64,000 nucleotides of DNA from Octopus sinensis (GCF_006345805.1 NW_021832528.1:62001-126000); one strand, 5' to 3'; numbered from the stretch's first letter, positions 6,733-61,820 are shown. Notes: generated from the letters alone by a model not told the origin. Translations and numbers: made by a program.

Positions 6733-6800
6733 GACACACGTCCCCTTAATTATATTTAATTTAAAATATTAATAAATAAAAGGAGAGTGTTGTAGTGTGT

Positions 6801-8623
6801 ATGGGCAGCCAAGAGTGTGTAAAGCGAAGCATAGCGAAACTGTTGATGGAGAGTGACCCCAAATTCCTAAGCAGCGTGATAACGTGGCTGGACAACATAG
6901 TGTGCCAACTGAAGGCGACGAACAACATAACATGTAAGGAGATTGTGTGATTGGGAGTCAATTCGGACAATTATGAAGAAGGATTCGACTTTCCGGGCAA
7001 TTTCGTGGCGTTGGTGGGTGGGACGAGTCCGGAGATGATCCTGGAGGCGATTCCGTGGATAGACATGAAGGTGTGTGAGGCGCGTGTGTTGGGGACGGTG
7101 ACGTTGGACGACGAGAAGGGTCTGAGTGAACCAGTGTGGGTGTCCAAGTGGGTGGAGTACACGGGGAGTGACCCCGATTGGAGTCGGCTGGTGTGTGCCG
7201 TGACGGACATGCTGGTGAAGGCGGAGGACGATCTGCAGGAGGTGATTGAGTGGCTGGAGAGGAAGGTGGCCTCCTATAAAATTGGTGGAGGAAGTTTTGA
7301 GAGTAATGTTGGCATGGAGGAGACGACTGATAAATTGAGGAGATTGGACGAGACCTTCCATCTCCTCGTCTCCACTGTGTCCGACCACTTGTTGATGACT
7401 TTTGTCCTCTGGATTGACCACAAACTGGCAGAAAATAGACTCACCAACGAGTTCTCATTCGGTCTATATATTTATTCATTCCAGACCCTCATGTCCCACT
7501 CTATGTCCCCGAATGGCTCAAAATCATCCAGTCCAATAACACCCAACAAATGTTCGAGGACACTCTCAGTCGATTCGACATCCACAAACTCCCCGTCCTC
7601 GTCCAAAACATCAGTCCCTCCAATGCCCTCTCCCTCGGACTCGCCCACTCCCCACATCCACAAGTCCTGTCCGTCAAACAAGTCAACCCTTCCAACCGTC
7701 CCCGACTCGACCCAGTCCCCACTTTCGTCACCGTCATTGAGTCCCCCTCCAATCGACCACCCCCCAAGAACAACCACGACTACACCTGTCCACACTGCTT
7801 CCTCAAAATGCCCGACATGAACAGTCTTAACCAACATCTCCTCGATAACGCCATTCCCTTCGAGTGGGTCAAGATGGGCGACCAAATGTCCATCATCATA
7901 GCCCAACAAAGTGACGACGAATCAGAAGAGGACAGAGTCCCCGTCTTCCAAGTGGCCACCCAGACCACCTTTAAGTTAGAACGATATTTATTCCCCCCAT
8001 TAAAGAAGTTCACTCCCTCCGCCTCCACCAGAAATGCCACCGACGGCCGAAGGATAGTCTCCGACAGTGTCAGGTCCAAGTTGGAACACGCTCGGTCGAT
8101 GAGGAAGTTTGGCAAGAGGACTGCCCGCTCCTCCACTGATGAGGAGGAAGATGTCGAGGACCCCTCCTATGGTTCCGTTATGAATCCTGGAGGTGAAGAC
8201 GACAGTCCCAAACTCAAGTCCCAGTACAAGGCACTCAAGGCAGTCTCCCGAGGAACTCGTTCTCGTCCATCGAGGAAGTGTCCCATTGATTTCTCCAGTC
8301 CTGAAGAAGAGGAAGAGGAGTCTGTCGAGAAAGTGACGAGTGCAAAGAGGAAGGCGACTGCCAAGGCGTTATTGGAGGATTCCGACTCGTCTGTCTCGTT
8401 GGAAGTGAGTTCTGAGTCATCTGGGAATGAAGAGCCCGTGGCAAAGAGGAAGCGATCGACGAGGAAGAGTGCGCAGTCCGTGGAGGAGACCTATCCATGT
8501 CCGTACTGTGAGAAAGTGTTTGAGGACCCGGGTATTTTGGGGGAACATTTGTTTGATCACGTCTACGCTGATAAACAGGGGGATGAGAATAATGCGGAAA
8601 ACCCTATTAAGAATGACGCTTAA
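6801..8623 (+). CDS. C2H2-type zinc-finger protein with acidic/basic low-complexity region
   Basis: ATG 6801; introns 6934-6957 (24 nt) and 7462-7484 (23 nt) join ORFs 6951 and 7550. Motifs YTCPHC..LNQHL and YPCPYCEKVF..LGEHLFDH. Confidence 0.75.
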
Positions 8624-8799
8624 TTAGTTTAGTCTTTTTGTTTTTATGGTGTCTCTACCTTGCTTATTCAAACAGCCTATGCCCGATCGTAATAAAACTG
8701 ATTGAGCTGATTAAATATTTTACCGGACGTTATTTTTGCAATGAGTTTATTTATAATTTGTGACAAGTGCATTTCTGGAACAAAATTACGTTTTATACA

Positions 8800-10390: not shown

Positions 10391-10897
10391 ATGAATAATT
10401 TTGAAAAAAATTAAGGACCAGAGCTATGTGTCACAAAGTATTGTCTAGGTCAGAGTTTCGCAAATACTTTTGGAGAAGAACCAATTTTTGATATTCTTGG
10501 AAATTTTACAAAATTGAAAGCTCCATTTACCATCTGTCCAAATCAAAACTTCAATGATGATTAAGAATTCGTTTAAAAAATAAAATTAATTAGTTTCATT
10601 ACTAAGAGATGTAATTCCTGATATCTTAGGAGAGTTGACCCCCTCCCTTGCTCGCTCACACATCCAGTAGTGACACACATTCTCGTCACTAATCACACTT
10701 GTTCACGTTCCTCCACAATCTTTCGGAATAAACAGACAGCACACATTCAAGCTCCCTCTTAATGTCACAATTCCAACATAATATTGTATTACTCGTTATT
10801 TCCGACTCCCCAATGTCTTACTAATGCACTATACATACAATTAATGACAACTAGCTCACACATTGATTAGGACAACCACCAGAAATGAATATTCAAA

Positions 10898-12116
10898 TCA
10901 ACTATTTAAAGTGGTCTTTTGGAGTCTGTCAAGTCTATTGAGCAAAGACTGATTTTCAATTTCTGCATTGGCCAAGGAGTGTCTGGTCTCCCTCAGCCTA
11001 CTGCGGAGACTCCGATTGGCATTCCTGAGTGAGTCCTCCCCCTCTTCGCAGGCCAGAACGGACGATTGGTAGTGGACAATCTGACTCTCCAAACTGGCCA
11101 CCTTCCAATTTAGTCACACCGCCTCCACCCGGGTCTTCAAAGACGACATTTCCTGCATTTTCAAGGACTGTTCATTCTCCAGGCACTTCAGTCTCCGAGT
11201 GGTCTCCACTCTCACTAAACAAACTCATTTTGGACACTTTCCGAGTTCTGAAGGGAAGGCTGCCTCTCCCCACACGCCTCCTCTTCACTCTCCACGTTTT
11301 CCGACTCCAATAACTATATATATATTTTGAATATTACAGTTTTGGTGAGTTCTTCCCGCTCGGTCAGCAAACAGGCAAGTTTATCCTCTACGTCCAATTA
11401 GTCCAAAATATACCGAAATCCCCCGATTGTTTATATTCCTCTAATTTGGCCTTGAGACTATCAGACAGGACAGCCACTGAGTGTATGTCCTCACTCTGTC
11501 CTTCATTTTCAACAATGTTTAATAAATTACTTGTCTATATTATATATATTATTATTTATTAATTTAATTAATTATTATAATAAAATACTTGAATAATAGT
11601 ATCTCGTTGTTCTAACAGTCGTTTGGTGTGTGTCACTCTTTTGGACAAGTTCAAAGTGGCTTCCTTCAACTGACTCAACTCCTTAGGATAAATCAGGATA
11701 GCCAACATCAGTTTTTTGTTGAATGACTGATTTCTTCTGAATAAGAGTGTCCTGCAGTTCATAAATATACAATTGCTGGTCGTCCAGATGTGCCTGTAAG
11801 ACTGCTCTTTCCTCGTTATTCGTGTCAATATGTTATTCGCTTCCCTTAGCCTGTCTTGTGAGTAATTGGCCTGCAATGTTTGTTGGGTGTACTTCTCTGG
11901 TGATGGAGGGGGACTGTCCGTCCTCTGAGTTGGGGTTGTCGTCGGTTGTGTCTGTCAGTAAGGATTGCCTCTGGTCGAGATCTGCCTTTAGGAGAGTTCT
12001 GGCTTCTGTCACGATGGCTCTTTCGTTATTAATTTGTTGTTCAGCCTGGATTGATGTGTGTGATATACCTCCTCGTTTATTTTTATGAATGAGTTGACCA
12101 GTGACTCCTTATTCAT
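10898..12116 (-). CDS. unknown coiled-coil protein, multi-exon
   Basis: ATG 12116 MNKESLVNSFIKINEE, 21- and 22-nt GT-AG introns, and a heptad-like C-terminus LRNANRSLRSRLRETRHSLANAEIENQSLLNRL. Confidence 0.6.
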
Positions 12117-12167: not shown

Positions 12168-12779
12168 TTAGTTAGTAATTTTATTAGAAATAATATTTTT
12201 GACAATTTGTCCTCCTTTAGAAATAACTAAGAATATAAGGGAGAATAACCCTTATCGGAGACACCCCCCACATAGTCCGAGCCGGAATGGACAAGCCGGT
12301 CAATGTACTCCTCATTCTGCAAGAAGTAAGGGCGGACAATGGCATGGTAGATCATGACACTCCCATTGTGGCGGGAAGGGAGGTAGCACACAATCAGAAT
12401 GGCAGCCTACCCTCTCAACACCCCCCACCTTGAACACCCAATAGAGGGGTACCCACGACAGAATGATATCCGCGAATGTCTCAGTGACGGAGAGGAGTGC
12501 GTAGACCACCCAGTAAATGAGCCACACGACGTCGTCCTCCTTGTGGGGGGACTCGATGGCCTTAATACTGGCAATGAGGGGGGGACACAACGAGGCGTAG
12601 GTGGGGTAGCCCATTCCGATGAGAGTGCTCACCAACTGCCCTCCAATCCCCATCCCCACCAGCACGAACAGCACCCCCGACACCCCCAACCACATGTACG
12701 ACATGTTCCCTGTGTTCTGTATGTATCCTGTTATCTCTCTTATTTTCTTCTCGATCGTTGTGTTGTTCTTTTTCCTCAT
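12168..12779 (-). CDS. REEP5: receptor expression-enhancing protein 5/6 (TB2/DP1/HVA22 family)
   Basis: [49 protein letters not shown] after removing introns 12568-12591 and 12407-12428. Confidence 0.9.
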
Positions 12780-14384: not shown

Positions 14385-15481
14385 TCAAATCCCATTAGTA
14401 TTGGTTAGTCTCAGTCTCTCCGATGGATGTGCCTTGACATGTCGATCTAGTGTATAGCAACCGCGTTCACTGCCAGTAAATTTGTGGGCTACGAACAACG
14501 ACAGAAGAATTATCATCAAAAATACAATCACAGGCCCGCATATGTACACTGCAATACAAACAAACACAACTAACCTGCTTTTATCCCACGTTCTCCATCA
14601 TACAAATATTTATTGTAAAATGAATCAAATACACCCTTCTCATATTCACTACTCACTTGTTTGTTCTTACTAGTCAATTCTCTATCCACACTCGGACTTG
14701 CCGTTGCATCTGAATTTTTGCCCATCTTTGCAATCAAATCAGGCGTTTCATTCACCGCAGGTGGACTTGCCGTTGCTCCAGAATTCACGCCCGTCTTTGC
14801 AATCAAATCAGGCGTTTTATTCGCCGCAGCTGGATTTGCCGTTGGATCTGAATTCTCACTCGTCTTTGCAATCAAATCAGGCGATTCATTTGGCACAGTC
14901 GGACTTGCCGTTGCATCAGAATTCTCTCCAGTATTTATTAACGACTCAGACGTATCATTCGCCCCAGTCTGGGTTGCCAGTACTTCCGAATTTCTGCCTG
15001 CGTTAGTAGTAGAGCCAATTTTATGTGTGGAGACTGCCTGTGAATGACCTGGCTGTATTGTATGGACATATTTATCGTCCATTAAAGATCGTGTTTGGTC
15101 TGGCTGAGGACTATCGGTTGTTGTCACAGAAACAGTGTTGTTGGAGGACAGAGTGGTCTGTCTCAACTGTTGGTTAAGTTGTACACAATATTGTTGGGTG
15201 AGCGCATTGGTGTAGTTGAATATGACTTGCCCGGTGAGCACATCATTGCAACTGCACCGATCGGAGAATATTTCGCATTGGAGGGGCTTGAACAGTCCGT
15301 TTGGCTGGCAGAGTATTTCCCACAACTGTAAAATGTCATCGACTTGATATTCCAGTCTAAACGTCAATAATATCAATTTATATCGCAGACTAATTAAGCA
15401 ACAGCAACACTTACAATTTACGAGTGCATGGCCCATCCACCACTGAAATCTCGTTTTTTGAAGCAAATTCGTCCACGCCAA
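14385..15481 (-). CDS. type I membrane protein: thyroglobulin type-1-like domain, Ser/Thr/Pro repeat stalk, TM helix, short tail
   Basis: CQPNGLFKPLQC..RCSCNDVLTGQVI; 23-aa repeats; a 26-nt intron joins to TM VYICGPVIVFLMIILLSLFVA and tail HKFTGSERGCYTLD. The N-terminus is uncertain. Confidence 0.7.
14690..14935. repeat. 69-nt coding tandem repeat, about 4 units
   Basis: GGA(C/T)TTGCCGTTG recurs at 14694, 14763, 14832 and 14901. Confidence 0.9.
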
Positions 15482-15917
15482 ATATATGACTCTACAAATA
15501 AATGTTTTTAAAATATTGCTGGTTTTGTGTTTAGCTTAAAGGACGGGACTTATTTTGTCTAAGTATTAATAATTTTGTGCATAAATTTTGGTGAAAAATA
15601 CCGGAAAGAAGACAAAAAAAAGACACAACAACAAATACATTTGAAGAAAACATAAACTAATTTTATTATCAACATTAATAAAAATAATTCCAAATATAAA
15701 AACACGAATAATAATTTTCATTAAAAAAGTGTCATATAAATGTTACTCTTATATCTCACTTGGAGACCAACAGACCTCAAGCAATCCCTCACCCTAGTAC
15801 CCCTGTGACGTATGACAGGAGCACTCCAGTAGCAACCACGTGAGGGATTAGTGACAAAGCCCACTAATGGCTAAACAAACATCACCAATATAAAACGTGG
15901 GGAATCCTGGTCTGCCA

Positions 15918-16466
15918 ATGAATTGTGTGGTGTGCCACAAACAGGAGGTCCCCTCCCAAAATTGTGAGTGGCAGGAGATTGTAGACGTGGGACTGTGCCA
16001 CACGTATTGTCTGAAGTGCAGTGTGTGCAGGGAGGATCTGAGCGAGGGGGAGACGTGTCTCGTCAGGAGTGGGCGCATATTCTGTCCTGCTGACTACTGC
16101 AAGTACTCTCTCACGATGACCAGGCTATATCGACACCAGTGCACTCTCTGTGGGCAGTGGCTGCAGAATGGACAATTCTATGTCCACTTGGAGGGACAAA
16201 TCTGTCATTTCGAGTGCCCACGGAAGTCTGGAGAACAAACAGACAAATCGGACGACTTGAGGAAATTGAGGGGCAATAAAAAACATCGACTGAGGACGAC
16301 GATCACTGAGTGGCAGAGGAAGGAATTGAACAAATATTTTTTGTACAATCCTCGACCAGATCGTGGGGAGAAGACAGCTTTGGCCACATGTCTTGAATTG
16401 TCCTGCAAAGTGATTGGCATTTGGTTTCAGAATAAAAGATGTGAATCAAAAAAACAGTCTTTTTGA
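15918..16466 (+). CDS. ISL1: Islet-type LIM-homeodomain transcription factor (shortened)
   Basis: LIM CxxC..HxxCxxCxxC..FC. Homeodomain RLRTTI..NPRPD..WFQNKRC..KK (NPRPD and NKRC are Islet-like). Two 21-nt introns, 15964-15984 and 16103-16123. Confidence 0.8.
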   Translation: MNCVVCHKQEVPSQNCEWQEIVDVGLCHTYCLKCSVCREDLSEGETCLVRSGRIFCPADYCKYSLTMTRLYRHQCTLCGQWLQNGQFYVHLEGQICHFECPRKSGEQTDKSDDLRKLRGNKKHRLRTTITEWQRKELNKYFLYNPRPDRGEKTALATCLELSCKVIGIWFQNKRCESKKQSF

Positions 16467-16899
16467 TTACATTTTGTTTATTTTTATAATCCAAATAATC
16501 AGTCCAACTAAACAAACTGACTCTATCCTTGTCTAGACTACCTCAACCAGTGCTCTCTTTCAGAAAGTCTTCATGGAAAGTCACATGGAAGCTTTTTTCA
16601 GGCTCTCTTACCTGTCTGATACAAACAGTCAAGGATAGTTGAGGAGTCCTCGTGGTATACAAAAGAATAATATCTTCCATTAATAAAAATATTATTTTTT
16701 AATTATTTTTTAACGGATAACCTCATTTAGTAGTAGTTGTAGCGTGGTGTTCTTGTTGCCTTTATACGTGGCAATTTTTTGTTGTTGTTTTCTTGTAACA
16801 TATTTCTATTTGTTTTATTATATTTTCTTATTTGATATTCCTTCGATTTTTCAAGTTTTGTAATTCAATTTACTGATTTTAAATAACGGCGTGATTTCT

Positions 16900-19480
16900 T
16901 TAAAATCCCGTTATTTTAAATTTATTAATCTTGTATAACTACAAAACTTCTATTTACCGATGGAAGTGTTGTTTATTTTTACTTACATCGAAGCGACCCT
17001 AAATTTTTTTAATTTATATTGATATGTATTATTTCATATTATTTAAAACTACCTCTACGCGATTATTCGACAAAATATTTATTATTTCAGCTGCTGGCTA
17101 GCATTGTGATTCGAATTTATCCAGTCGCAACGATGGATTAGTTCCAAAATCTTTAATTCGAATTTATTTAATAATTTTTTTATTTCTTACTTTATCGCCG
17201 ACATTATAATCATGCTTACTATTATGAGCATTTATTTTCCTGTTTATAGCTTTGTAATAATTAGAAGTTTCACAAATGGGTTTCCTTATAAATTTGAATT
17301 TTTTTGGATCCAGATAGGAACATTCTGACTCGGAATTATCTACGTATATATTTTAAATTGGACTACGCAAATTTTCTACGCTCTCTGGAGTTGAACAATC
17401 AAATTAATCTTTCATTTGCTTTGAAATAGCACAATCATTTGAATCATCAAAAACATAATTACATACCGCTCAATGTTTCGGACCACCCTATTTTTCTCAA
17501 TTTCCAAGTCAATCCTAAATTATTTTTATACGGTTCCTTAGAGAAACTATTAGATAAGCTTAAACACATTTATTCATTTAAAAACTTGGACAGATATTCA
17601 TGTTGGCGCATTTTAAATTATCGATTTTATACTCGATCATATGTTCCGGACCAGTTTAAAAAAAACCGAAATTTATTAAACTTATAAAAGTAATAATTAA
17701 TATTTCCTCCGTTGTTCGTTATAACAGCATTTATTCGCTCTGGAAGTGAATTGTATAATTTTTCAATGTACGAATTATCAATCTCGTACCAATTTTTTTG
17801 GTCAAATTCCAGAGCTCTGGAAGATCTTTTGGTTCCAGATCATAAAGTTTTTTGTTTTAGTACCGACCACATATTTTCAATAATACAGTTCGGGTGACTG
17901 GCTCGGCCAAGTTTCTAAGATTTTTATTTGTTTCCTTGAAAAAATTCATTGTCGACATGGACCGATGGAAGGAGCGGTCTTGCTGGAGATTACATGGTCT
18001 CATCATAAAAATTTTGAGTCCAACATTATAATTCTCTGATACTCTGCGGAATCAACATTTTTAATGCTCAGACAATGTTTCTCCATCCATTTGCGCAATA
18101 GCTCCCCAACCATAATGCTAGGAGAAAATTTTCGTGTTTTTAAACAATATTTTGAGTCAAATCTAGAGTTTGGTGGCCTTCTAACATAATTTTTTGTGTT
18201 TGAATGCAAATTTATTTGCATTCATCACTAAAATAATTTTAACCCCATCATGTTGGCTCCAAGTTAATTCTCAATGCACAATTTTTCTAGCCTTTTATGG
18301 CATATGGAAACTTGGTTTTGGCATTGCTTTCGCCATTCAAATAATTTCTTTGTAGGCATCTTTTAATTGTATTTGTGCTTACAATAGAATTTATTTCATA
18401 TCAAATTTAATTTGATTTGCCGTTTTTGGGGTCTGCTTTCGAAATTCTCACTATTTGCGTTCAGATCTTGGGGATAACAATCTGGTCGACCAGATTTTGG
18501 GTCTGTCGGATATAGTCCAACGTATGAATATCTGGAAATTGTTCTTTGAACAGCAGTTTTTTGGATATTTTTAATTTTTCGGCAATTTCTCTTTGTTGAA
18601 GCTCCATCTTTAAAAAAAATGATGATGCGACCCGATCACCCGTGAAACACGCGGCATTTGATTATTTAATTAGTCTTTTGTTTTTAATTGAATCAAAAAT
18701 TATTTAAAATTTAAAGAGATTTAACTGGTTCGAAACATATTGATTGCAACTGGTCCGGAACATATGATCGAGTCAAAAATCAATTATATTCAATTGGCCC
18801 AAACAAAATATTAAAGAAATTTTAGAATAGAATAAATGATTTAAGCTTATCTAATAAGTTTCTCTAAAGAACCGTATAAATATTTAGGATTGACTTGGAA
18901 ATTGAGAAAAAAGGTGGTCCGAAACATTTGAGCGTACTGTATATATAATAACCATCAATTATTGGATTTATTTTTTTAATTCCCCTATATTTTTCAAAGG
19001 GGCTCTCATTAGAAAATAAATCTACAGAGATGTTATAACTGTACACACATTTTTTTAATTCCACTATCCACTTTTTCTCGCTGTTATCAAGGATTTTTGA
19101 TAACTTTCTTGTTAAAGTTTGGTTGAATCTCTCTACAATTCCCTGTGTCCGTGGATTGTTAGGTCTTCCGTGAATTTGTTTGATTTTAAAATCAAAACAA
19201 AATTTTTTTATTTCCTGATTCTTAAACTCAGACCCATTATCTGACTGAGGAATTTGACATGGGCCGTTTAAATAAATAATGATTTTAAATTTTCCGATAC
19301 TTCTTTGCCTGACTTATTATAAAGAGGCATTGCGAAGGCAAATCTATAAAGATTGTTTTAACTAACCAACCTGCTATAGACATCAATGACCGTTAAAATC
19401 CATTTAAAATCATGATTTCAGTCGAAAATTTTTTCAAGTCTATAAGATATATCTGAAATCGTTGTGCCTCGAAAAATTTT
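16900..19480 (-). mobile_element. retroviral-type integrase element relic (Ginger/GIN- or Polinton-like) split by Tc1
   Basis: LTVIDVYSR, QSDNGSEF, HGRPNNPRTQGIVERFNQTL at 18960-19450. A C-terminal-like YNVGDKVRNKK..NKFE resumes near 17150-17250, beyond the Tc1. Confidence 0.7.
17462..18939 (-). mobile_element. degenerate Tc1-family transposon with about 200-bp TIRs
   Basis: Inverted repeats cgctcaatgtttcggaccacc / ggtggtccgaaacatttgagcgtactg, with TA flanks. Minus-strand IIFSDE and QQD motifs with many stops. Confidence 0.85.
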
Positions 19481-49143: not shown

Positions 49144-49220
49144 AAAAATGGGCTAAAATATCTTATTTTATTAAATCTTGAAAAAATACAAAATTCTAAT
49201 ATATATAATCAGTCCTTGAG

Positions 49221-51169: not shown

Positions 51170-52800
51170 AAATAAATAGTTAATAATAGAATTAAACAGT
51201 TTCTCGAAACACTTTCAAGAAGAAAAAGGAATAAGCTAGTTATTAAGTACCGGCTCGGAGGATTGAAAGACAATTCCAGGATAAAACAGCCAGCGAGATC
51301 CTCTGAATAATGATTATAAATTTCATGGGATCTCTGGAGCGATGGGTGCACAGACGGCCAAGTTTCTTTGGATGAGCAACGGTCTTTGCCCCGAAAACAC
51401 AGGAAGTCTCAACGGCAATTCACAAAAGCGAAAGCGATCGCACAAATTATCGTATTTAGTCAGTTTCATGGATTCGGCCTTCACAGCCGACAAGCAGTGG
51501 AATTCAATGCTCCTTTGGCGAAAGAGTCGGCACAGGTGACGTCCCAAACGAGCTGCTTCTCGGATTCAAGAGCAAAAAAGCGTACAGCCGTCGGAACGTT
51601 TTGCATCTTCATGGTCGAGGCCCGTCGGTTCCAGAACTGAAGGGAAACCAGCTCTTTCCAGGGCTTTGTGAATTAAATTGTTAATTTCAGTGTACCGAAA
51701 AAATTGGCCGGCACTCATTCGACAGGACAGAGGATGTAATTCAAGTGGGTCAACTTTAGCCCCAAACGACAGGGGTGAGGTCTGCAGACGTGGAGTTCAA
51801 GGCGATTGCAGATACCCAAACGGAGTGAATCTCTATCGAAGACAGTATCCAAAAGCAGAGAAGGGAGTACATTCAGCCAGGAGTCTGAGTATGACTGACA
51901 GACGGAACGAAAACAGGCCAGTCTGTGTTGGTCGAGGAGTGGTTCCAAGTCAGCTGAAGATCGACGGCAAAGAATTTTGTCCCAATCCCGCTGAGAAATG
52001 ACATCGGAAGGGATTTCAGAATAATTTTGTTTCCAAAGTGCAAGGGCCGAATCAACATCAGAGTCCAAAGATAATTCAGTAGTTTTTTCTAGAATCTTTT
52101 AGACAAGGAGATATGATCCAGACGCCAAAGAAAAAAAGGCTTGAAGAGCCAAATCAAGACTGGAACGGAGGTCCAGACCTCCGTGACTCACAGGAAGTTT
52201 AGCCTGACACCAGGCAATATCGTCGAAATGCACATTGAGAATTTTCTCCGCAAACCTCCGAACCAAGGAATGATAAAATTCCAGCACTTGCGTGACATAA
52301 AAACAAGGAGAGTTTCTCAGCATATAAATGATTTTTGTTTTAAAAGATAGTTTTTGAAGATGTAGAATGAAGGATAAGGATCAATGACAGAAAGTTTTTC
52401 AGAAAGAGATGCAATGAGATTTTTTTGGAGAGGAGGATTCGTGTAGCTGAGTCGGCGAGAATCGGTGACCCCAGAATTTCCAGATCAGACAAAGGTGTTG
52501 TCTCAACTGGGGAAGGAGTCCGAAAAAAAGAGAAAAGTTCTTAAACAGTGAAATTGACAAACTCAGACGTGTTGGAATTAATGACCAGACCAATGTTCGA
52601 TAACGCCGGAATTAGAGTGACTAAGTCTTTCAACAAAACATCGGGCGGACCGCCCAGGGTACAACAATCAAGATACCAAAGATTTAAACAAAATTTATCA
52701 GGAATGGAATTCGTACTGTCAGTATTTCTTTTTGTGAGGTCTTCATGTGAAACTGATAATTGATCATTTTCAATTATTTCCAAAGTATCTCTTAAATCAA
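51170..52800 (-). mobile_element. CRE/R2-like retrotransposon, decayed RT-to-RLE portion
   Basis: WYLDCCTLGGPP (YLDD-derived), QAKLPVSHGGL, SQRDWD, DSWLNVLPS..LRLGICNRL, CRPHPCRLG, CELPLR. Confidence 0.85.
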
Positions 52801-52809
52801 CAAATTTTT

Positions 52810-54393
52810 GTTTCAATAGAGCTGTAATGTAGATCTATTAGCTGCATTTCCAGATCTTCAAAATTTATTCATTCTAGAATCTTTAAATTAAGTTTATCGA
52901 ATGTAATTAAATCTGGATATATTCTAAAGTTGGATGTTTGGGAAAATAGTTTTAATTCAACAAATCTTGAAGAAAATTCATGAATTACTGACTGAATTAA
53001 CGACGAAAATTCTAGAATTTGTTTAGGTAGATCTTTTTTCATAGACACTAAATCTAATTTTAAGAATTTTTTAGTATTTTTAACATTTAAAATTGTTGGA
53101 AAGTAAGTCAATGTTAAAAACAACCAATTTGGCCTCAAATGCCTGAATTAAGTCAATCGTGTAATATAATAATTTATTACCACCTTTCAAATTCAATTCA
53201 TTTAAATGGCACATAAAATCTGCCAAAAATGTTAGTTTAAGGATCCATCCAGGGTCCATTAATTGTGGATACTTATCAATTACTTTTTCACTCTGTAAAA
53301 ATATTTGAACTTCATCAAACCACTGGACAAATCGTTCAAGAACTTTTCCACGGCTCAACCATCTTACGTTGTTATACATAATTAATCCTTTTAACAGATT
53401 ATAAAAAACCCATATGTAGTGAATTTACTTCATTTAATATTGTCTGAAATTTTCTTTTATTTAAGGACCGAGCAGAAATGAAGTTAATTATTTTTGTGAC
53501 AATGATTGTAATGTGCTCGAATGGCTCGAATCCAGATTTTGCACATAAAACCTGAAGGTTGTAAGAAAAACGAATAACCTGTTGATGAATGATGCAATGA
53601 AGACCAAGAACTGGATGCCCGACGTGCTGTGTAAGTAAGCTGACAAAACCGATATTCTTTCCAATCATACTGGGTGCACCATTTGTGGTTATTGATACTA
53701 TTTTTGAAATATCTATCTTATTCTTTGTGATCGAATTTACAACTGTGTTAAAAATATCAACTCCTTTATTAGTTGTTGCTAATGCTGGCAAAAACAATAA
53801 TTCTTCCATAATAGTATTTACGGCGCAATATCTGACAAAAATTGCTAGGGGTGACAATCCAGATATGTCCGTACTTTCGTCAACACAAAGGGAAATGAAA
53901 TCATAAGACTTGATATCTTTACTTTGTTGAAGAAAGATATTTTAATTCATCACCAAAATTCTTTTCTTTATTTCGTGAAAATGGAATATTTTTTCTACAA
54001 TTTTTGGATTTTCTTTGAATAAGAATAGTGCACATTTTATCCACGCTTCTTTTATATATTCACCATCAGAAAAAAGCTTTCTATGCTTCGCAATAACATG
54101 AGAAATAACGTAACTAACACCGATTGAATCAGATTGACTGTTAAAGAGTGTTTTGAATTATTCTGATTGTTGAGAGTTCTTTTTAACTAAGATGTAATTG
54201 TTTCTCTTTGATATTTTAATCTCTAAAATTCAAGAACAAAAGTCCCATTAGGCAGTTTAATCACTTTATAATTTTTTATTAATAAGATTTGATTTAATTC
54301 TTGATTAAGATAAAATCGATACTATGGAGTCCCTGAAATTTTTTAACGGAGTCCCTTTGGGGGTCCCCATTTAAAAAAGGTTGAGAAACGCTA
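52810..54393 (-). mobile_element. SPIN/GTF2IRD2-like hAT transposon relic
   Basis: LAIFVRY, SITTNGAPSMIG, LHCIIHQQ, VRWLSRGKVLERF, FLADFMCHLNELNL. Terminus TAGCGTTTCTCAACC at ~54393. Confidence 0.85.
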
Positions 54394-55199
54394 TTCTAGA
54401 GCCTCTAAGGTCTTTTGAGAAGATTCAACATTTTAAAATGTGGCATCAAAAGTTTCAAAAGTGCCACCCATGGCAAGGCTATAGAAGAACAGATCGCGCG
54501 TCTGCAGAGTCTTGAGCCATTTTGTTTCTTGTTTGTGAACTTTCTAGACGTGCCTGATTGGAGGTCTATTCTGGGTTAAACAATTTGCGTGAGCTATTTG
54601 TTTGTATGTGTAGATTCATCGATCAGAGGAGAAAGAATATAAACTGTCAGTGATTTTTTATATTTTGTAGGACGGGGGATTTTTTAACTCTCTATTTGTT
54701 GTAATTTTCCTTTGCAAACTGATAGGGACACTTATGATTTAATGCTTTTACAAACCATTACACGCAACTTTTACCTGTGAAATTGGACAAGTGATATGAA
54801 TTAAAATTTACAACCGCGTTCTTTTTGCTACCAAATATTAAATACAGAAAAATACATAGCCTGAAATGACACAACTATGCAATACTGGAATCGCCACGAT
54901 TGGAAATAGTACATCTGTAAGATTTATACCAATTTTAACAAAGCAATTTTCAAATTTGACACTTTTTGTATCAATTTTGGTAATCATGTAAAGCGAAGAA
55001 AGAGACATTTTCTATTTACAATTGGACTTAAACCATTTTTAATTAATTTTGACATCTTTTTAAAATTGTGCTACCAAAACAATCGTTCTTGAATAGTCCA
55101 AAACAATTCAGTAAATGTATACAGACCTGACACCCTACCCCTTTATCATCTCTGCCAAGAAAATCCTCTTGTCAAATTGTTCACCGGACGGGGACTCGT

Positions 55200-55305
55200 G
55201 GACGATGTCTGCTTTGGACTCAAACTCGTGGAGGCATTTGACAACTCAGGATCAGCCAATGGCCGGACACGGGTGATTACGGCTTTAACTAACTAACTAA
55301 CTAAC
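55200..55305 (+). repeat. GC-richer segment ending in (TAAC)5; possible LINE/SINE 3' end
   Basis: Perfect TAAC x5 at 55286-55305. Confidence 0.45.
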
Positions 55306-55861
55306 TATACAGAGCGTAACTGATTCTTAATATAAGATTTAAACAATTCTAATTTTTTGAGAAAATGTCATTGCTATGGAACATTTTCTCATAAAAATAT
55401 TTTTTTATTATTAAATTTAAACATTCAACAAATACGGGAAAGCTGAATTATTGAGTAAGGCATTATTAACAAACATTGGTCTGAACTTTGTAAATCCTCG
55501 GCAGTGATGACGGTGATGACACAATTTTTTAAATCAATGAGTCGGAAAATTCCTCCTCTATTTAAACAAAATTTGCTTTATGTTACAAAGTCACCAAAAA
55601 AATAAATGGGAACTTTTTTCTCTTTATTACTAAGTGACTTCAGACCTCTACCGAATTTATTTCTTGAAATAAAAGTCATTGTTAGCCGGTTAGAAGTGAA
55701 TATGATTGACTCGTGATGTCTATATCTACACATTTCCTATAATATCCAGACTAATGAGCTACAAGACTCAAAAAAACATTTTCCGAAAATCCAACGGAAA
55801 GAAATTGTTAGTAAATATATCAATTAATGCCAGAAATATTAAAAAACAAAAAAATGCCAAT

Positions 55862-56895
55862 TTAAACACAAAAATTAGTACAAATCCAGGCATCGACAGT
55901 TTCCCTCAACTCAGCACTCGCATGCTGTGCTTGCTAAACTAAAAATAAGGAGAATACATCAATGATATCAAACACACTGTCGACTGACAACCCTCCGTCC
56001 TTCAACTTCTTCATTGCGACCACATTTCCCTCCAAATCAAAGGCCAGGACGACACTCAAACATATTTTCCCCTCAAAACTACCTCCCGACTGAACACAAC
56101 TCTTCCTCCACACACCCATCCAACACATGACTCTCCCCAATCTACAAAACACACAGAATACTCCACTTTGCACGTGGTCACCACTGTGGGACACTCCTTC
56201 ACGTCCAGACGGGATCCCTTCCCCACCGGCTCCACCTCACCCTCCGCGGAAACTGAGACCAACGGGAGGATTGTGTCCGCCAAGGCTACTTTTATAGCCA
56301 GGGATGTGACGTCATATATATTCCCGCCAGATTCCAATAACTGAAGTGAGGTTAACCACCGTGAATATAACCAAAATGTCAATGTGGAGTAACCAGCATA
56401 TTTTTGACGGAATTATGCAGAGGGAAGGATTATGGTGGTAATTCGAAAACGCGGAGTTAATGAAGCCCACGACTTCCGCTGACATTTGGCTGGGAAAATC
56501 ATTATCGTTTTCGGAAAAGACATTTTTTGAACTAAATAAAATTTATATTATAAATTAATTATATTTAATTCAATTAATATTTTTTAAATTAAATAAATTA
56601 CCATTCAAAATTAAATTCAATTCTCCCCGATGTGGGTGTCGATTGGTTTGGAGTTGAAAGCTCGCATTTTACCCCAACAATGACCTCAGTATTACCCTGA
56701 GTGATTACTACGATTGAAATACTTGTCTAACACGAGCTGATCCATTAGCATTGACAAGTATTCCACTCTCAATGCCTATTTCCCTTAAAGAACGGCAGTC
56801 TCTACCATCAATTCGCACATTGTTCTAAAAATTGGTATATTTTGATATACCTTTATTCCTTCTAATATAAACTGCTTTTCTAAATAACTTAGCAT
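55862..56895 (-). CDS. EXOSC7: exosome complex component RRP42
   Basis: MLSYLEKQFILEGIK..VRIDGRDC..NANGSARV..TEVIVGVKCEL..LLESGGNIYDVTSLAIKVALADT..VVTTCK..MKKLKDGGL. Confidence 0.92.
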
Positions 56896-56981
56896 GTCCC
56901 ACAACAGCTATTATTATTAATAATTTATTTAATAATAATATTAAAAAATAATAATAAAATAATTAATTATTTAAAAACAAA

Positions 56982-57900
56982 TCAATCAGACCAAACCCCC
57001 TCAGACTCATTATCAGAACAGTTAATAGACACCCTCCTCTTCTCCAAAGCAGTGTTGAGAGCAGATATCATTCCACAGGCAGGCTGTACCCCCCTCTTAT
57101 CCCCCACAGGATTTAGTTTAACCCCCCCAGCCCGAATAGCCTCCATTAACACACTCCTCTTGCCCTCCTCAGCCGGAGACTTGCCTTGGCCGTTTTTGTC
57201 GACTTTGGGAGGGTTTTGATTGGTTTTTGATACTTTTATGCTCAATTCGGCCATCAATCCTTCAAAGGAGACCTTTCGGGGAGATATAGCCGAGATATTC
57301 TCCTCTTTTTTGGCATTTTGGACTACCTGAGAGGACTCCTCGGGGATTTTATGGTCAGAAAAATCCGCGTTTTTTTGTTCCACGGTCATTTCACGGTTTT
57401 TATTGCTCATAAATGTCCTCATAATCTAAAATATATTAATACTAGTTAATATATACATAATTTATATCATAAGAATCTTCTAGATTACGAATTATTGATT
57501 TTCTGAGTGATATTTTGACAGAGGAGTCCAGAATTTGAAATTTCTGGGGCTTTTCGCACGTGTTGAGTGCTTCTTTTAAGGGTTCTGGAATTTTCTCGAA
57601 CGGATTTGGCGGGCTTTTAAAATTGATGTTCATTTTAGTCCATTTAGGGGTGAAATTGTGGATTTTTTGACTTAAATTTTGTTGTTTATTGCCAAGTGAG
57701 TTTGTGATGTTTGATATTTCAGTAATTTCGAGTGATATTTTAGTGAATATGTCACGAGAGCGTGAGGATAGGTCACTGATTTGTCTCATTATGTTGACAA
57801 ATGCACATCCCGTCATAAAATTGAATGAATTTTGGGCAGATTCGGGGACCTCAGGGTCATATAGCTGCTCATTCTTGACTGTATTTATGTTTAAAGGCAT
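56982..57900 (-). CDS. WASF: WAVE/SCAR-family actin nucleation-promoting factor
   Basis: N-terminal SHD MPL..MTGCAFVNIMRQISDLS..DIF. C-terminal WH2 RSVLMEAIRAGGVKL, central LEKRR, acidic SDNESEGVWSD. Confidence 0.85.
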
Positions 57901-58151: not shown

Positions 58152-60027
58152 ATGGATACCCCACCTATCAATCCTCATGTTAGTCTAGAAGTCTCGCTAG
58201 AATGTGACGTACGAGAAATACTGCCAGATGGAGAGGAAATATATATTAAGTTAATTCAAAATATTATTCCCAGACCATCCACATTCGCCGAAAAAGTAGG
58301 GACACAAAACATTCAAATAATCAACCAAAAAATAAAGGAAAACAACAAAACTATTCCAAACACAACTCATCTGTCCACAATAAACCAAAATTTAAAGTAA
58401 AACACAAATAAACTAATTTCAGACTCGCCTACCAAGAAGTTGTCGTCCTCGGCGATTTGCTCAAAATATCCTCCATAAAAAACGATAAATATATCACACT
58501 TCAAAAAAGTCATAATTTTCCCGCCAATACTTCAAATGGCGGCATATCCTTTGATCTTCAAAGCAGAAAATTTGTATGAAAATGACCGTCATTTTTAGGC
58601 TTTAAGTCGGGCATATAAAGCCCTAATTGACGGTGCAGAAAAACTCGAGCGTGAAAGATTCGGCAAAGATCAAAGCAAGCGGAGTTGCCTTGATGTTAGC
58701 CGCGAGATTCTGAGGCTGAGGACCCTCTGGCATTTGAAAAGGACCCCCAGTGGGATTACAGGAGAATTAGACATAAATCCACAAGGTTATTTATTATATT
58801 AAATATAAAAAATATATTTAAATTAATTATTTTAAATAAATTGTCTAGTGTCAAATGATTCTTGTGGTGCCACTACATTTAGTTTAATCTGCGACGAAAA
58901 CGGTGTGTTTACAGTGTCCCTACCAGACGAACTAAAGTGGCCATTATCCCTTAAACTCTCCTCCACAAAAACATGTTTCAACATTGATCTTGTGGGTGAT
59001 TATACAACAAGAACAAACCCTGCTTCAATAATCCTCCAAAGAGCTCAGAATACTATAATTGTTCAAAAACTATTCCAAACTGTATTTTTGACTATTCAAA
59101 TATACTAGTTGTGTCTGGAACATGTTGTTTGTGATACTGCAAGAGTGTTGGGAGATCGGATTGTACTCGACATGGCTAATCTAGTATATTCATTACCAGT
59201 AGTTGATTCTCTGTAGTCTGTGTTGGACAGTCCTCTATTTACTGCTACATTTGAGTACATACTTTATTACATATATGTGACCCACATGACAAGTATTGTT
59301 TATTATTTTATTATTAATTAATTAAATAATATTTTAATTAGAATTTAAATCAAAAATTAATCTTTTGAATAAAGTGATTATTCTTTTAAAGAACTGCAAT
59401 TTGAGACATTGGTTTGACTGATTTGTTATTTCAGCCTAATTGAGTGTCTAAAGTCCACAAAATTGACTGATGGAGTCACAACCAAGGCTGTGGAGGACTC
59501 CTGTCAGTCCTTTGACTGCATTCGAATGCAGATTGTAATGAAATTGGCCAATGTCCCATTCCAGTGAGAATTTGTGGGGATTTTGTGGTAGAAACAAGTT
59601 TTTTGTCGAGATTTGTGAAGGGAAAATACGAGTAGTCACCAGCAGGCATAAAATGGTGGATAATTTGACTCAAATTGGCCATATTTTGCACAGAGAAGTA
59701 ATTTTTTGTTGATTTTTGTAGGCAATGTTATTCAAGTGTGATATTGTTGCATTATTTGCCGCCAAATTTGGATTTATTGAATGCAGTCCACGTGTGTTAG
59801 AAAATTGGTCAGGTGAGACAATTTCAAAGGACGAGGCTGTATGTGTATTCCATAGGAAATTAGTGTAGTGTGTGATTAAGGAGTGTAGGTGTGTGGTGGT
59901 GGTTGTGTCCCCCAACGAGGATGTCCGTGTGTTGAGGACAAGGTGGCCTTTGGTTGAGAAAAATGTGCCCGAATTGTCAGCACGTGACTTTGTGTCCACA
60001 TTGGAAGCTGTTTTTTATTTGGAATGA
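58152..60027 (+). CDS. MED17: Mediator complex subunit 17
   Basis: AYKALIDGAEKL..SREILRLRTLWHLKR..ITGEL parallels MED17 GAERL..NSELLRLRQHWKLR..ILGDL. C-terminal GKIRVV and RDFVSTLE. Many micro-introns. Confidence 0.7.
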
Positions 60028-60211
60028 TATATATTGATCTTAGAGTTGTTAAATTGGATTAATTAATAGTATAAGTATATATGTAGACAATGCGGACTAA
60101 TTAGGAAGCCAAATGGAGATGTTAGACCAAGCAGTAAATTCAAATAAATAACAAAAATAGAAATTTAAATCAAAATGGGGAATAAAAAACCGTCGATTAA
60201 ACTCATTAAAA

Positions 60212-61820
60212 ATGTCCCCAGTTAGTTTAAGTTGGCTGAAAACATTTGTAATCAACACGTCAGGAAAGTTGTACTTTTATTGGCTGTCACTCATGTTTTT
60301 GGTGGTGTTGTACAACACACTCATTCTGACAGCCAGATGGTCATTCTGGCGACTGCAGGAGGACTTTTCAGTGGCTTGGACTGTGTTGGATGTGTTTTCA
60401 GATGTGGTTTATGTGATTGACATATTCCTCAAGTCCAGGGAAGGTGAGAGTTGTCCGCAATGTAGGCTTCCTTGAACAGGGAATTGTGGTGACTGACATT
60501 AAAAAGTTGGGACAAAAATATAGGGCGACTTTGCAGTTTAAATTGGACATTATTTCAGTCATCCCTCTGGACTATCTTTACTTCACAAACCGAGGACTAT
60601 TCGATAATTATTTCCCCGAAATGCGAGCAAATAGAATTCTAAAAATATATGTAATCGTCAAATATTTCAACTTGGTGGAAAACAAAACCAAATTTCCTAA
60701 CATTTTCCGAGTGATTGAACTAGTGGCTTACATCCTGATTATAATCCACTGGAATGCCTGTGTGTATTTCTCAGTCAGCAATTCGATTGGATTCTGTTCT
60801 GACCGATGGGTGTACGACATGTGTGGGTCAGGGAAGGACCAGTTGATATATATGTATATATACAGCTTCTATTGGTCTACTCTCACTTTGACTACAATTG
60901 GAGAAGTCCCTCGACCTGTCACTAATTTTGAACATTTTTTTGTAGTCCTCGACTTTTTAATCGGGGTCCTCATCTTCGCAACCATCGTGGGGAATATTGG
61001 GAGTATGGTCACCAACATCAACTCCTCGAGGATCGAGTTCCAACAGAGCATGGACGGGGTTAAACAGTACATGGAATTACGCCATGTTGACAAATCACTG
61101 CAAATTAAGATCCTCAAATGGTTCAACTATCTTTCCGCAAATAAACAGTCTCTTAATGATGACAAGGCTCTCGATATTCTCCCAAGCAGACTCAGGGCTG
61201 AGATTGCTCTTAATCTTCATTTTGAGACACTCAAACAAGTCAAATTATTCAAAAATGTCGAGGCTGGTCTTCTCATGGAAGTTGTTCTTAAACTCCGACT
61301 TCAAGTCTTCAATCCCGATGACTATATCTGCAGAAAGGGGGACATTGGGAGGGAAATGTATATTGTCAAAAAAGGGATCCTCAACGTCGTCTCCGAGGAC
61401 GGGAACACAATTTTTGCCACCCTCAAGGAAGGTGCTATTTTTGGGGAACTGAGCATTATGAATATTCCTGGGAATAAGACTGGGAATAAGCGGAGTGCTA
61501 GTATCCGCAGTTTTGGGTACAGTGATCTGTTTGTGCTACAGAAGGATGACTTGTGGGATGTCCTTAAGGAATATCCCGAGGCTGAAAAAACTTTCATAGC
61601 CACGGGGGAAGAGATTCTTAGAAAGGATGGTCTTTTGGACGAGGAATTGGCCGAACAGGCCAAAATTGATAGAGAAAATGAAAAATTGCAAATTTTGGCT
61701 TTGTCGAGTAAAGTTGATAAATTGGAGAGGACTCTTGTCTCCTTTATTGGGACATTTGAATCGCGACAAATTCAACTAAAAAATAGATTGGATTCGCTTG
61801 AGGGTCGAATAAATATATAA
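60212..61820 (+). CDS. CNGA: cyclic nucleotide-gated cation channel alpha subunit (CNGA/TAX-4-like)
   Basis: 22-nt intron 60444-60465. GFLEQG, IHWNAC, pore YWSTLTLTTIGE, VLIFATIVGNIGSM, C-linker, CNBD ICRKGDIGREMYI..FGELSI..RSASIRS. Confidence 0.96.

Follow-up and report, generated by a model that had tools for sequence, protein, structure and literature searches.

The DNA analysed here (the window) is a stretch of 64,000 nucleotides filed under Octopus sinensis (GCF_006345805.1, NW_021832528.1:62001-126000). It is mislabelled: the sequence is that of a dicyemid, an animal parasite with tiny introns. Among its genes are a zinc-finger gene, PSMB3, REEP5, a CNG channel gene and a sortilin-like gene, and it also holds RT and DDE transposon relics. 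In several genes, strongly G-rich runs of about 70-570 nt switch abruptly to C-rich ones, on one strand throughout. The main features are collected in Table 1.

Table 1. Genes, skewed blocks and junctions in the window (positions counted from its first letter).
Feature	Position	Strand	Composition	Basis or remark
Two G-rich blocks	4374-4644, 4946-5429			Viterbi; downstream of + strand PSTK/KTI12-like gene
Abutting pair, C-rich then G-rich	C 6125-6308, G 6312-6420			Viterbi, change-point; junction 6305-6315
G-rich block, 5' part of zinc-finger gene	6782-7352	+	G217/C83	Viterbi
Zinc-finger gene	CDS ~6834-8623	+		Unique open frame on + strand
G-to-C junction in zinc-finger exon	7349-7355			Best change-point 7354, lnL gain 61.8
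C-rich block, zinc-finger gene	7354-7861	+	C198/G63	Viterbi; coding strand unchanged
Weaker G-rich 3' end of zinc-finger gene	8297-8623		Fourfold G:C 19:8	
C-rich on +, i.e. sense-G	10639-10861			Directly downstream of minus-strand coiled-coil gene 10901-11534
REEP5	12407-12693	-		C-run intron 12568-12586, G-run intron 12407-12428, sense-G block 12628-12693
C-rich on +, i.e. sense-G	14514-14693			Viterbi; 3' end of minus-strand gene 14570-15481
C-rich block	30888-31078			Viterbi; no assigned gene or orientation
Exons within sortilin-like gene	36270-37082	+		Four successive exons alternating C-, G-, C-, G-rich
G-rich blocks, 3' end of sortilin-like gene	38230-38361, 38870-39363			Extend beyond stop near 39270
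G-rich block, upstream region and PSMB3 start	40844-41005		G39/C9	Viterbi
Sharp junction at PSMB3	41008			Change-point; support 41005-41010
C-rich block, PSMB3 exon 1 and C/A-rich intron 41143-41167	41008-41178		C63/G21	Viterbi
G/T-rich block, PSMB3 3' exons	41389-41860		G135/C50, T180/A107	Viterbi
Two C-rich (+) blocks	55957-56245, 56763-57174			Each the sense-G 3' end of a minus-strand gene
G-rich block, 5' short exons and G/T-rich introns of CNG channel gene	59564-60125			+ strand gene

Six base counts quoted in a preliminary description of this DNA are exact on recount. These are 25 G/9 C at 7021-7080 and 7 G/29 C at 7621-7680 in the zinc-finger gene, 15 C/2 G and 1 C/11 G in the PSMB3 introns 41143-41167 and 41486-41510, and 10 C/5 G at 12568-12591 and 0 C/14 G at 12407-12428 in the introns of REEP5, read on the sense strand. 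The block structure claimed there lies far above local shuffles. Counted per 100 nt, G-C has a variance of 84.5; shuffling inside 2-kb chunks gives 41.0 +/- 2.0. A 3-state HMM of the G/C series gains 199 nats, versus 5-16 nats in shuffles. Viterbi decoding yields 19 strong blocks, each 66-571 nt long and together making up about 5.6 kb, with a G:C or C:G ratio of about 3:1. They occupy only about 9% of the window and are neither periodic nor ubiquitous, and 2-kb windows along the stretch show no long-range skew trend.

The skew is chiefly one of G versus C. T and A follow it weakly when blocks are taken whole, more clearly so at third codon positions (r=0.39). Of the bases on the G-rich strand, G makes up 0.30-0.36 (0.18 in neutral sequence), C 0.11 (0.18) and A 0.26 (0.32), with T almost the same; G is gained at the cost of C and A. 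Block GC content is 0.42-0.47, versus 0.35 in the background, with single blocks ranging from 0.30 to 0.65. Within blocks CpG o/e is 0.82, elsewhere 0.84, without any CpG-island-like association. Runs of G in blocks show no excess beyond the composition-based prediction; GTGTG and GGAGG occur there about 2-fold above first-order expectation.

Blocks of opposite sign adjoin in 3 pairs, where 0.017 would be expected; 0 of 20,000 random placements reached 3. Change-point support intervals resolve the junctions within these pairs to 6-11 nt, and the paired lobes are broadly alike in length (571/508, 162/171 and 184/109 nt). Junction polarity varies, being G-to-C at 7354 and 41008 and C-to-G at 6312, and most blocks are unpaired. 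No motif or hairpin is shared by the junctions, of which only 1 of 5 folds better than shuffles.

An example of an abrupt switch can be found in the zinc-finger gene. In its G block the fourfold sites are G:C 37:7 and valine is encoded by GTG 13 times and by GTC never; in the neighbouring C block they are 4:74, with 15 GTC, 2 GTG and 16 leucine CTC codons (p=1e-19 for the change in fourfold sites). An imperfect palindrome lies at the junction, near 7354 (DNA fold z=-2.2). The fourfold C bias carries on to about 8040, and the return to G is diffuse, over 7861-8052; the 3' end, at 19:8, differs from the 4:74 upstream (Fisher p=4e-11). The reading frame of the C block contains a SUZ12-like Zn-finger motif, and the part of the protein encoded there has many Pro, Ser and Thr residues.

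PSMB3 matches solved PSMB3 chains at 1.7e-45, and its coding strand is certain. Fourfold G:C goes from 3:14 in the first half of the gene to 20:8 later. The G/T block takes in the G/T-rich introns 41486-41510 and 41606-41630 and runs about 170 nt past the stop codon, and its Y-ending twofold codons are T17:C3. Amino-acid replacements relative to human PSMB3 are not significantly polarised.

Other genes show the pattern in different arrangements. The sortilin-like exons count, in order, G44/C84, G40/C22, G40/C77 and G36/C22, and the composition changes at tiny introns. Over the final four 30-codon windows of the gene at 14570-15481, sense fourfold G numbers 5, 7, 6 and 2, and C 0, 1, 1 and 0. 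The block at 56763-57174 carries on for about 220 nt beyond the stop codon (56982-56984); it and its neighbour at 55957-56245 have sharp inner edges by change-point (57168-57192 and 56242-56264). The pair at 6125-6420 probably belongs to a minus-strand gene, as a weak GOLD_2 match suggests. No convincing ORF was found on either strand of 4374-5429.

Amino-acid choice can be separated from the skew by shuffling synonymous codons within each gene, which leaves the protein unchanged, and scoring the clustering of G3/C3 or keto3. With the amino acids held constant in this way, 8 of the 12 host gene segments show significant G3/C3 clustering, most markedly the zinc-finger gene and PSMB3 (p<=0.0005, variance 6-7.6 times expected). 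The CNG, sortilin-like and PSTK-like genes and two unnamed ones follow at p=0.002-0.03, in line with the alternation described earlier for the CNG, PSTK and SorCS-like genes. Clustering is not significant in SLC35F, POU, LIM-HD and one unnamed segment, nor, for G3/C3 or keto3, in the RT and DDE transposon relics, where alternation had already been called not obvious.

Introns share the skew. Their skew correlates with that of the flanking third positions (r=0.45, p=0.0015, n=48), also when PSMB3 is left out (Spearman 0.36, p=0.018). Skew at first and second positions is correlated with that at fourfold sites (r=0.52), twofold codons move as keto versus amino, and the sign flips inside the zinc-finger, PSMB3, sortilin-like, CNG and unnamed genes. 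The polarity, G with some T versus C with some A, is thus a local property of strand composition that marks codon third positions, first and second positions less so, as well as introns and untranslated flanks. Since clustering persists with the proteins fixed, and introns and flanks share the skew, amino-acid choice is not the cause, and the earlier remark that it is not the whole explanation holds good; skew at synonymous and intronic sites did not vanish under this control. These data support a regional, strand-asymmetric source common to synonymous sites, introns and untranslated flanks. Sequencing error is rejected as this source because the reading frames are intact and homologous to known proteins. 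No published description of such skew in dicyemids was found in the literature.

The blocks are related to gene ends. The comparison covers 13 genes, using ad hoc models made in this analysis. Sense G-C from -300 to +100 around the stop is positive in 11 of the 13 (mean +32.5, t-test p=0.0024), and the 200 nt after stops average +9 (p=0.014). G blocks continue for 170-220 nt beyond stop codons and enter DNA that is apparently non-coding. The last 100 codons do not differ significantly from upstream ones (G3-C3 p=0.14, keto3 p=0.06; one gene is mis-framed). Among strong blocks with an assigned gene strand, 12 of 16 are sense-G (p=0.077, several of the gene models having no homology support). 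Two divergent gene pairs, at about 6770-6830 and at 15660-15890, show a C-to-G flip across their shared upstream region.

Many genes had been said to begin with a G/T block. This is so for some: sense-G lies near the predicted 5' ends of the zinc-finger, CNG, PSMB3 and REEP5 models and is absent from those of sortilin-like, SLC35F and POU; G blocks are found more consistently at the 3' end. Sense-C blocks are seen in coding sequence only, the exceptions being three C-rich introns, of which PSMB3 has two and REEP5 one. On this small sample, block layout follows transcription units rather than nucleosomes. Sense-G spans roughly the final 300 coding nucleotides and 100-200 nt past the stop, the sense strand is often G-rich at the 5' end too, and C-rich blocks lie inside genes.

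The best reading, which we infer throughout and hold tentatively, is strand-asymmetric mutation or repair anchored to transcription, of the kind associated with R-loops and GC skew. Transcription would leave one DNA strand exposed for long at certain sites. Near the ends of genes, the exposed strand would be the non-template one in structures of the R-loop type, as at human promoters and terminators with GC skew; in gene interiors it could be the opposite strand, for example via antisense hybrids. Asymmetric damage and repair on the exposed strand may then, over evolution, raise G and lower C and A. Insertion of C opposite abasic or deaminated sites is one concrete route to a gain of G. Because G-rich RNA pairs more stably with C-rich DNA, the process might reinforce itself and end in strongly polarised blocks, and the skew may since have gained a function, such as termination in a gene-dense genome.

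The sense-G stops, the flips at divergent pairs and the relics without significant pattern speak for anchoring to transcription. Against it, sense-C blocks inside genes fit least, junctions of 6-11 nt in mid-exon are not obvious from a diffuse process, and simple deamination would not yield a block GC above background. The lack of excess G runs, of a significant third-position contrast in the last 100 codons and of polarised PSMB3 replacements also counts against it. It is possible, if doubtful, that the abutting G and C lobes with their few-base junctions, lying across exons, introns and flanks, reflect a previously undescribed process that polarises strands in the dicyemid nucleus and cannot be put down to any known asymmetry linked to transcription, replication or nucleosomes. 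Such a process would override codon choice and, in part, amino-acid choice, and could be a self-reinforcing bistable mechanism driven by hybrids or by breaks.

The same abutting pairs, the sharpness of their junctions and the similar lengths of their lobes would also suit bipolar units that start from fixed points, an unlikely but not far-fetched explanation. The point could be a site-specific break with resection or resemble an origin or terminus. Opposite strands would be single-stranded or newly made on its two sides, and strand-asymmetric repair or GC-biased gene conversion would add G to opposite strands left and right. The GC richness of the blocks and the lack of the pattern in transposon relics agree with this. 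However, both junction polarities occur, which a single point process is insufficient to produce, and most blocks have no partner. The junctions have no common motif or hairpin, and the dependence of sign on gene orientation and stop codon is unpredicted unless hot spots lie at gene ends.

Selection on the RNA or DNA sequence, recruiting silent sites and introns, is rather improbable. Polarised segments cannot self-pair, as keto/amino polarisation abolishes Watson-Crick self-complementarity, and might keep transcripts locally unstructured. Alternatively, they might be binding platforms, such as GU-rich 3'-end or termination elements and C/A-rich elements, as the G/T blocks running past stops and the excess of GTGTG and GGAGG would allow. 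Windows of 100 nt in the zinc-finger mRNA are indeed less stable than a global shuffle (-20.4 versus -26.1 kcal/mol, z=+7.3), but PSMB3 shows no local folding effect (z=0.05). Whole-transcript stability is not lowered and is, if anything, above shuffles (z=-1.0 to -3.8), since a G/U block is able to pair with a C/A block. It is also hard to see why nearly every silent site over 300-570 nt would be needed.

The preliminary description had favoured nucleosome-phased, strand-asymmetric mutation or repair, or a positioning code, and had named a fixed periodicity as the result that would support it. No such periodicity appears, and the proposal is now very unlikely. Autocorrelation of G-C falls monotonically to zero by about 300 nt without oscillation. 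The power spectrum is red noise, with excess power only at periods of at least 400 nt and no peak at 150-220 nt (ratio to shuffles 1.0-1.35). Block sizes are on the order of one to a few nucleosomes, the mean exon of D. japonicum is 198 bp (PMC6736024), and the four sortilin-like exons switch at introns. However, block lengths show no preferred size, other blocks cover several exons or switch within one, and the direction of skew varies with gene orientation and gene end.

Ordinary causes (amino-acid composition, translational preference for codons that end in C or A and suit a limited set of tRNAs, chance or assembly artefact) are largely refuted and almost negligible: the Pro/Ser/Thr-rich zinc-finger block, the coupling of first and second positions to fourfold skew and mild heterogeneity in the Argonauta CNG orthologue (p=0.04) are outweighed by clustering with amino acids fixed, the opposite codon set in half of PSMB3, skewed introns and flanks, intact homologous frames, and CNG orthologues without clustering in Lingula (p=0.67) and Owenia (p=0.27). 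Translational codon bias, with one codon set per gene and in coding sequence only, is rejected on the same grounds.

Kataegis, in which strand-coordinated mutations cluster around resected breaks, shares with these blocks its sub-kilobase tracts and the switch of the mutated strand at a point. It is a somatic change of C to T or G that lowers C; it does not raise G to 30-36%, whereas the blocks are a fixed germline composition in functional genes.

In mammals, Green et al. 2003, Touchon et al. 2003-2004 and Polak and Arndt 2008 reportedly described an excess of G+T on the sense strand. That transcription-associated asymmetry likewise produces a sense keto excess, affects introns and silent sites and spares untranscribed relics. 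It keeps a constant sign along a gene and amounts to a few percent; here, introns and silent sites are affected as well, but the local skew lies near 0.5, with values up to 0.9 at fourfold sites, and its sign switches inside genes.

Replication skew, known from bacterial chromosomes, mitochondria and human skew domains, has the keto/amino polarity and the abrupt sign changes in common with the blocks. In mitochondria, skew reportedly bends codon and amino-acid usage (PMC2779903). Replication domains span tens of kb to Mb and flip only at origins and termini; here the flips are 0.1-1 kb apart and related to gene orientation. Replication-associated domains are therefore rejected, given blocks of 66-571 nt, trendless 2-kb windows and a sign tied to gene ends.

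The transcription-anchored reading finds its closest counterpart in the human GC-skew modules at CpG-island promoters and terminators that favour R-loops (Ginno et al. 2013, PMC3787257). Both systems show sense-G at gene ends that extends into non-coding flank, here around 11 of 13 stops and with +9 after them. Both are also enriched where genes lie close together, and they may share a flip of sign across divergent promoters. Maize has its sense R-loops mainly at promoters and termination sites and its antisense ones near start sites, and their occurrence is correlated with skew in GC and in AT (PMC8327920). Unlike the human modules, the dicyemid blocks lie in an AT-rich genome (36% GC) without CpG-island character, span only 70-570 nt, and cover coding sequence whose synonymous codons they switch. 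Equally strong opposite blocks occur inside genes, with sharp junctions.

The window contains blocks, that is, stretches in which G strongly outnumbers C or the reverse; signs refer to the plus strand unless the coding strand is named (sense-G, sense-C). Every base count quoted in the preliminary description proved exact on recount. The variance of G-C per 100 nt is 84.5, twice the 41.0 +/- 2.0 found in shuffles kept within 2-kb chunks. A three-state hidden Markov model of the G/C series, with P(G) = 0.26, 0.50, and 0.69, gains 199 nats over an independent-sites model, while shuffled series gain 5-16 nats, which places the block structure far beyond chance. Viterbi decoding picks out 19 strong blocks, which measure 66-571 nt each and add up to 5.6 kb.

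On the G-rich strand, base frequencies inside blocks are A 0.26, C 0.11, G 0.30-0.36, and T 0.28-0.32, compared with A 0.32, C 0.18, G 0.18, and T 0.33 outside. The main effect is thus a rise in G and a fall in C and A. A T/A component is weak across whole blocks and visible at third codon positions. No surplus of G runs or CpG effects beyond composition was found in the blocks.

Two long AT-rich stretches (33-34% GC) are free of strong blocks; they contain transposon relics but not many genes with support. Blocks appear to be densest where genes are dense.

Positions of the features discussed; for junctions, the position is the change-point support interval
Feature	Position	Strand or direction	Particulars
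Junction at 6312	6305-6315	plus strand, C to G	
Zinc-finger junction	7349-7355	plus strand, G to C	mid-exon
PSMB3 junction	41005-41010	plus strand, G to C	
Junction at 56246	56242-56264	plus strand, C to G	
Junction at 57175	57168-57192	plus strand, C to G	
Diffuse transitions (examples)	7861-8052; 41174-41429		
Zinc-finger gene, region 1	6958-7352	plus	fourfold G:C 37:7; Val GTG 13, GTC 0; Leu CTG/TTG 11
Zinc-finger gene, region 2	7354-8040	plus	fourfold G:C 4:74; Val GTC 15, GTG 2; Leu CTC 16
Zinc-finger gene, region 3	8297-8620	plus	fourfold G:C 19:8; Val GTG 5, GTC 3; Leu TTG 4, TTA 1
Imperfect palindrome	7314-7393		GGAGACGA...GGAGAT / ATCTCC...TCGTCTCC
REEP5 intron, G6 run	12407-12428	minus (sense)	
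REEP5 intron, C7 run	12568-12586	minus (sense)	
G/T-rich stretch	4200-5450		about 1.2 kb
Block-free stretch	14694-30886		16 kb
Block-free stretch	41861-55952		14 kb
DDE transposon relic	21655-22272		in a block-free stretch
54-nt tandem repeat	40587-40774; 45630-45698		core TAAGGGGGGTCCCTTA
CNG protein	59338-61820		
CNG, public model	about 59725-61820		489 aa over 2096 nt
SLC35F	61974-63125		Pfam 3e-59

Codon usage was followed in 15 coding segments that have no stops and are open in one frame only; along them, skew at third positions and fourfold sites swings widely. In the zinc-finger gene, fourfold sites and the preferred Val and Leu codons change between three regions (Fisher p = 1e-19 between regions 1 and 2, and 4e-11 between regions 2 and 3). 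The flip is best secured in PSMB3, because homology fixes its coding strand across both halves. Its fourfold G:C counts go from 3:14 in the first half to 20:8 in the second (p = 7e-4), its Y-ending twofold codons from C20:T7 to C3:T17, and its R-ending ones from G7:A7 to G12:A1. Skew at first and second codon positions runs parallel to that at fourfold sites (r = 0.52 overall, and 0.35-0.39 once the zinc-finger gene is left out). Amino-acid replacements between human PSMB3 and the conserved protein encoded here show no significant polarity.

Amino-acid content can be held fixed by swapping synonymous codons among identical amino acids within each gene and scoring the clustering of G3/C3 or keto3. 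Clustering is strong in the zinc-finger gene and PSMB3 (p <= 0.0005; variance ratios 5.9 and 6.0). It is also present in CNG (p = 0.0055, variance ratio 1.70), the gene at 14573-15481 (p = 0.002), both halves of the sortilin-like gene (p = 0.02-0.03), and, on keto, the gene at 56985-57422 (p = 0.0025) and the PSTK-like gene (p = 0.0015). Clustering thus persists in eight segments with the protein fixed. The alternation previously reported for the SorCS-like (sortilin-like), PSTK, and CNG genes holds up; of the transposon relics (RT, DDE), in which it had been called not obvious, neither gives a significant result. Codon clustering was not significant in SLC35F, POU, LIM-HD, or the segment 57445-57900. 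A restriction of the skew to GC-rich windows was rejected, third-position |skew| exceeding binomial expectation in every GC3 class.

The same test on CNG orthologues provides an outside yardstick. The variance ratio is 0.88 in Lingula (p = 0.67), 1.14 in Owenia (p = 0.27), and 1.45 in the control cephalopod Argonauta hians (p = 0.044 on G3/C3, nominally significant). Because the Argonauta gene is mildly clustered, moderate heterogeneity within genes is not unique to the genome sampled here and is found in ordinary animal genes; the extreme cases are unique to it.

The skew is not confined to codons. In 48 tiny introns, G-C of the inner intron correlates with G-C at third positions in the 120 nt of exon on its flanks (r = 0.45, p = 0.0015); the relation is weaker when the four PSMB3 introns are left out (Spearman 0.36, p = 0.018; Pearson 0.29, p = 0.06). 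The two REEP5 introns cited in the preliminary description lie 140 nt apart; their homopolymer runs are skewed opposite to each other and out of step with their flanking exons. Tiny introns may form G-run and C-run classes independent of the blocks, as in REEP5.

G blocks run 170-220 nt past stop codons, and some lie where no reading frame is convincing. The PSTK/KTI12-like gene is followed by a long G/T-rich stretch in which neither strand has a convincing frame and Pfam gives no match. Possible identities are a long 3' UTR, a non-coding transcript, and a degraded gene.

Some blocks of opposite sign meet at sharp junctions, the remaining transitions being diffuse. Three pairs abut within 5 nt, with lobes of 571/508, 162/171, and 184/109 nt, where random placement predicts 0.017 pairs; none of 20,000 simulations gave three. 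Adjacent lobes were rejected as sequence-level inverted repeats, since they share just short chance matches with no common centre. Among the five junctions tested, a hairpin better than shuffles occurs at the zinc-finger junction only. This junction lies within an imperfect palindrome (DNA fold -12.5 kcal/mol, z = -2.2); no palindrome of this kind occurs at the remaining four.

A separate feature near PSMB3 is a 54-nt tandem repeat with a near-palindromic core. Four copies of the core, one of them inverted, lie 150-350 nt upstream of the gene, and two more near 45.65 kb have the identical 54-nt spacing (6 matches in all, 0.05 expected). The repeat is a candidate promoter element, insulator, or small mobile element.

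The preliminary description proposed that a strand-asymmetric mutation or repair process phased by chromatin, or a positioning code, shapes exons and introns alike. No supporting nucleosomal period was found: the Welch spectrum of G-C over 6780-61700 has surplus power at periods of at least 400 nt only, and power at 150-220 nt is 1.0-1.35 times that of shuffles. In 25-nt bins the autocorrelation declines from 0.22, reaching zero at about 300 nt with no oscillation. Blocks coincide with exons in four sortilin exons. As a rule this equation was rejected, since sharp junctions lie inside exons and CNG blocks cross several exons.

Gene ends give a better description. When 13 genes are aligned at their stop codons, the sense strand has more G than C between roughly -300 and roughly +100-200. 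The sum of G-C over -300 to +100 is positive in 11 genes, with a mean of +32.5 (t-test p = 0.0024, sign test p = 0.022), and the mean for the 200 nt downstream of stops is +9 (p = 0.014). At third positions, the last 100 codons do not differ significantly from those upstream (p = 0.14 and 0.06, PSMB3 being mis-framed in the computation). Among 16 strong blocks with an assigned gene strand, 12 are sense-G (p = 0.077, some of the gene models lacking homology support). The four sense-C blocks all lie inside genes. Third positions read G (5'), C (body), G (3') in several genes, namely the zinc-finger gene, 14573-15481, and CNG, and in PSMB3 if its upstream block is counted. In two divergent gene pairs, C flips to G across the common upstream region. 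The skew reflects a regional, strand-asymmetric influence on all site classes that is non-periodic, related to gene ends and orientation, and absent from the transposon relics.

The DNA is animal nuclear DNA of 36.0% GC with GT..AG introns of about 19-30 nt. It carries metazoan-type genes, namely PSMB3 (1.7e-45 to solved PSMB3 chains), a CNG channel, a sortilin/Vps10-like receptor, SLC35F, REEP5 (TB2/DP1), a KTI12/PSTK-like kinase, and POU and LIM homeobox genes, together with RT and DDE transposon relics. Animal introns shorter than 30 nt are reported solely from myxobolid Myxozoa and the dicyemid Dicyema japonicum (PMC13644364), whose genome has 36.7% GC (PMC6736024). The CNG reading frame is identical (100%) to a protein labelled Octopus sinensis at NCBI, from VCDQ01001575.1 of GCA_006345805.1, a 274,785-nt contig that was deposited under that name and includes the window. 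The runner-up matches are just 47-60% identical, and the gene's introns are about 23 nt. Given the tiny introns, the 36% GC, the low CNG identity, and the octopus kidney as the habitat of dicyemids, the contig is almost certainly a dicyemid contaminant mislabelled as its host. Searches for a further dicyemid PSMB3 found no match, those with the RT relic gave at best 43% identity, and an exact look-up of the zinc-finger ORF returned no record.

Octopus-tuned annotation pipelines fail on this contig. The public CNG model omits upstream exons joined by tiny introns, and the adjoining SLC35F has no public gene call. The analysis covers one 64-kb window and 7.8 kb to its right, with about 13 genes. 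Gene models were ad hoc, built from unique-open-frame segments with Pfam or PDB support; those of PSMB3 and the zinc-finger gene were curated by hand. These segments replaced three home-made dynamic-programming gene finders. Stop-free chaining called too many genes because G-poor strands are open in all frames, and a self-trained codon finder drifted and missed AT-rich genes.

The leading explanation of the skew, an inference, is that transcription exposes one DNA strand, on which asymmetric damage and repair would then act. The composition shift would fit a bypass step in which C is inserted across from missing or deaminated bases of that strand; it would also fit strand-asymmetric GC-biased conversion. 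Plain cytosine deamination is a misfit, since G is gained from C and A, T is unchanged, and GC is raised. Maize R-loops correlate with both GC skew and AT skew; those in sense orientation are concentrated at promoters and at sites of termination, and antisense ones are found close to starts (PMC8327920). Transcription-linked exposure accounts poorly for C blocks inside genes and for sharp junctions in the middle of exons. A serious rival is a process centred on a point, either a break with resection or an origin-like point. Selection at the RNA level for avoidance of structure is less likely, because the folding stability of whole transcripts is not reduced.

Silent sites are ordinarily read as recording a single mutational regime for each gene or region. 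In this DNA a few bases suffice for the regime to reverse, and the change is marked enough to exchange GTG and GTC valine codons within the same gene. Should the pattern hold for dicyemids generally, a compact animal genome would display the footprints of strand exposure, whether by R-loops, antisense transcription, or breaks, at high contrast. Because composition varies within genes, the pattern would also bear on gene finding, codon models, and the phylogenetics of fast-evolving parasites. Whether R-loops are cause or consequence of GC skew at gene ends would then be testable from polymorphism, heterozygosity in D. japonicum being 1.24% (PMC6736024).

Full-text literature searches found no paper on skew or codon usage in dicyemids, and both the D. 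japonicum genome paper and the 2026 short-intron paper are silent on these subjects. Skewed gene ends and strand asymmetry linked to transcription are already known from other systems. Abutting blocks of opposite sign, with a skew that switches synonymous codons within one animal nuclear gene, are not among the known cases.
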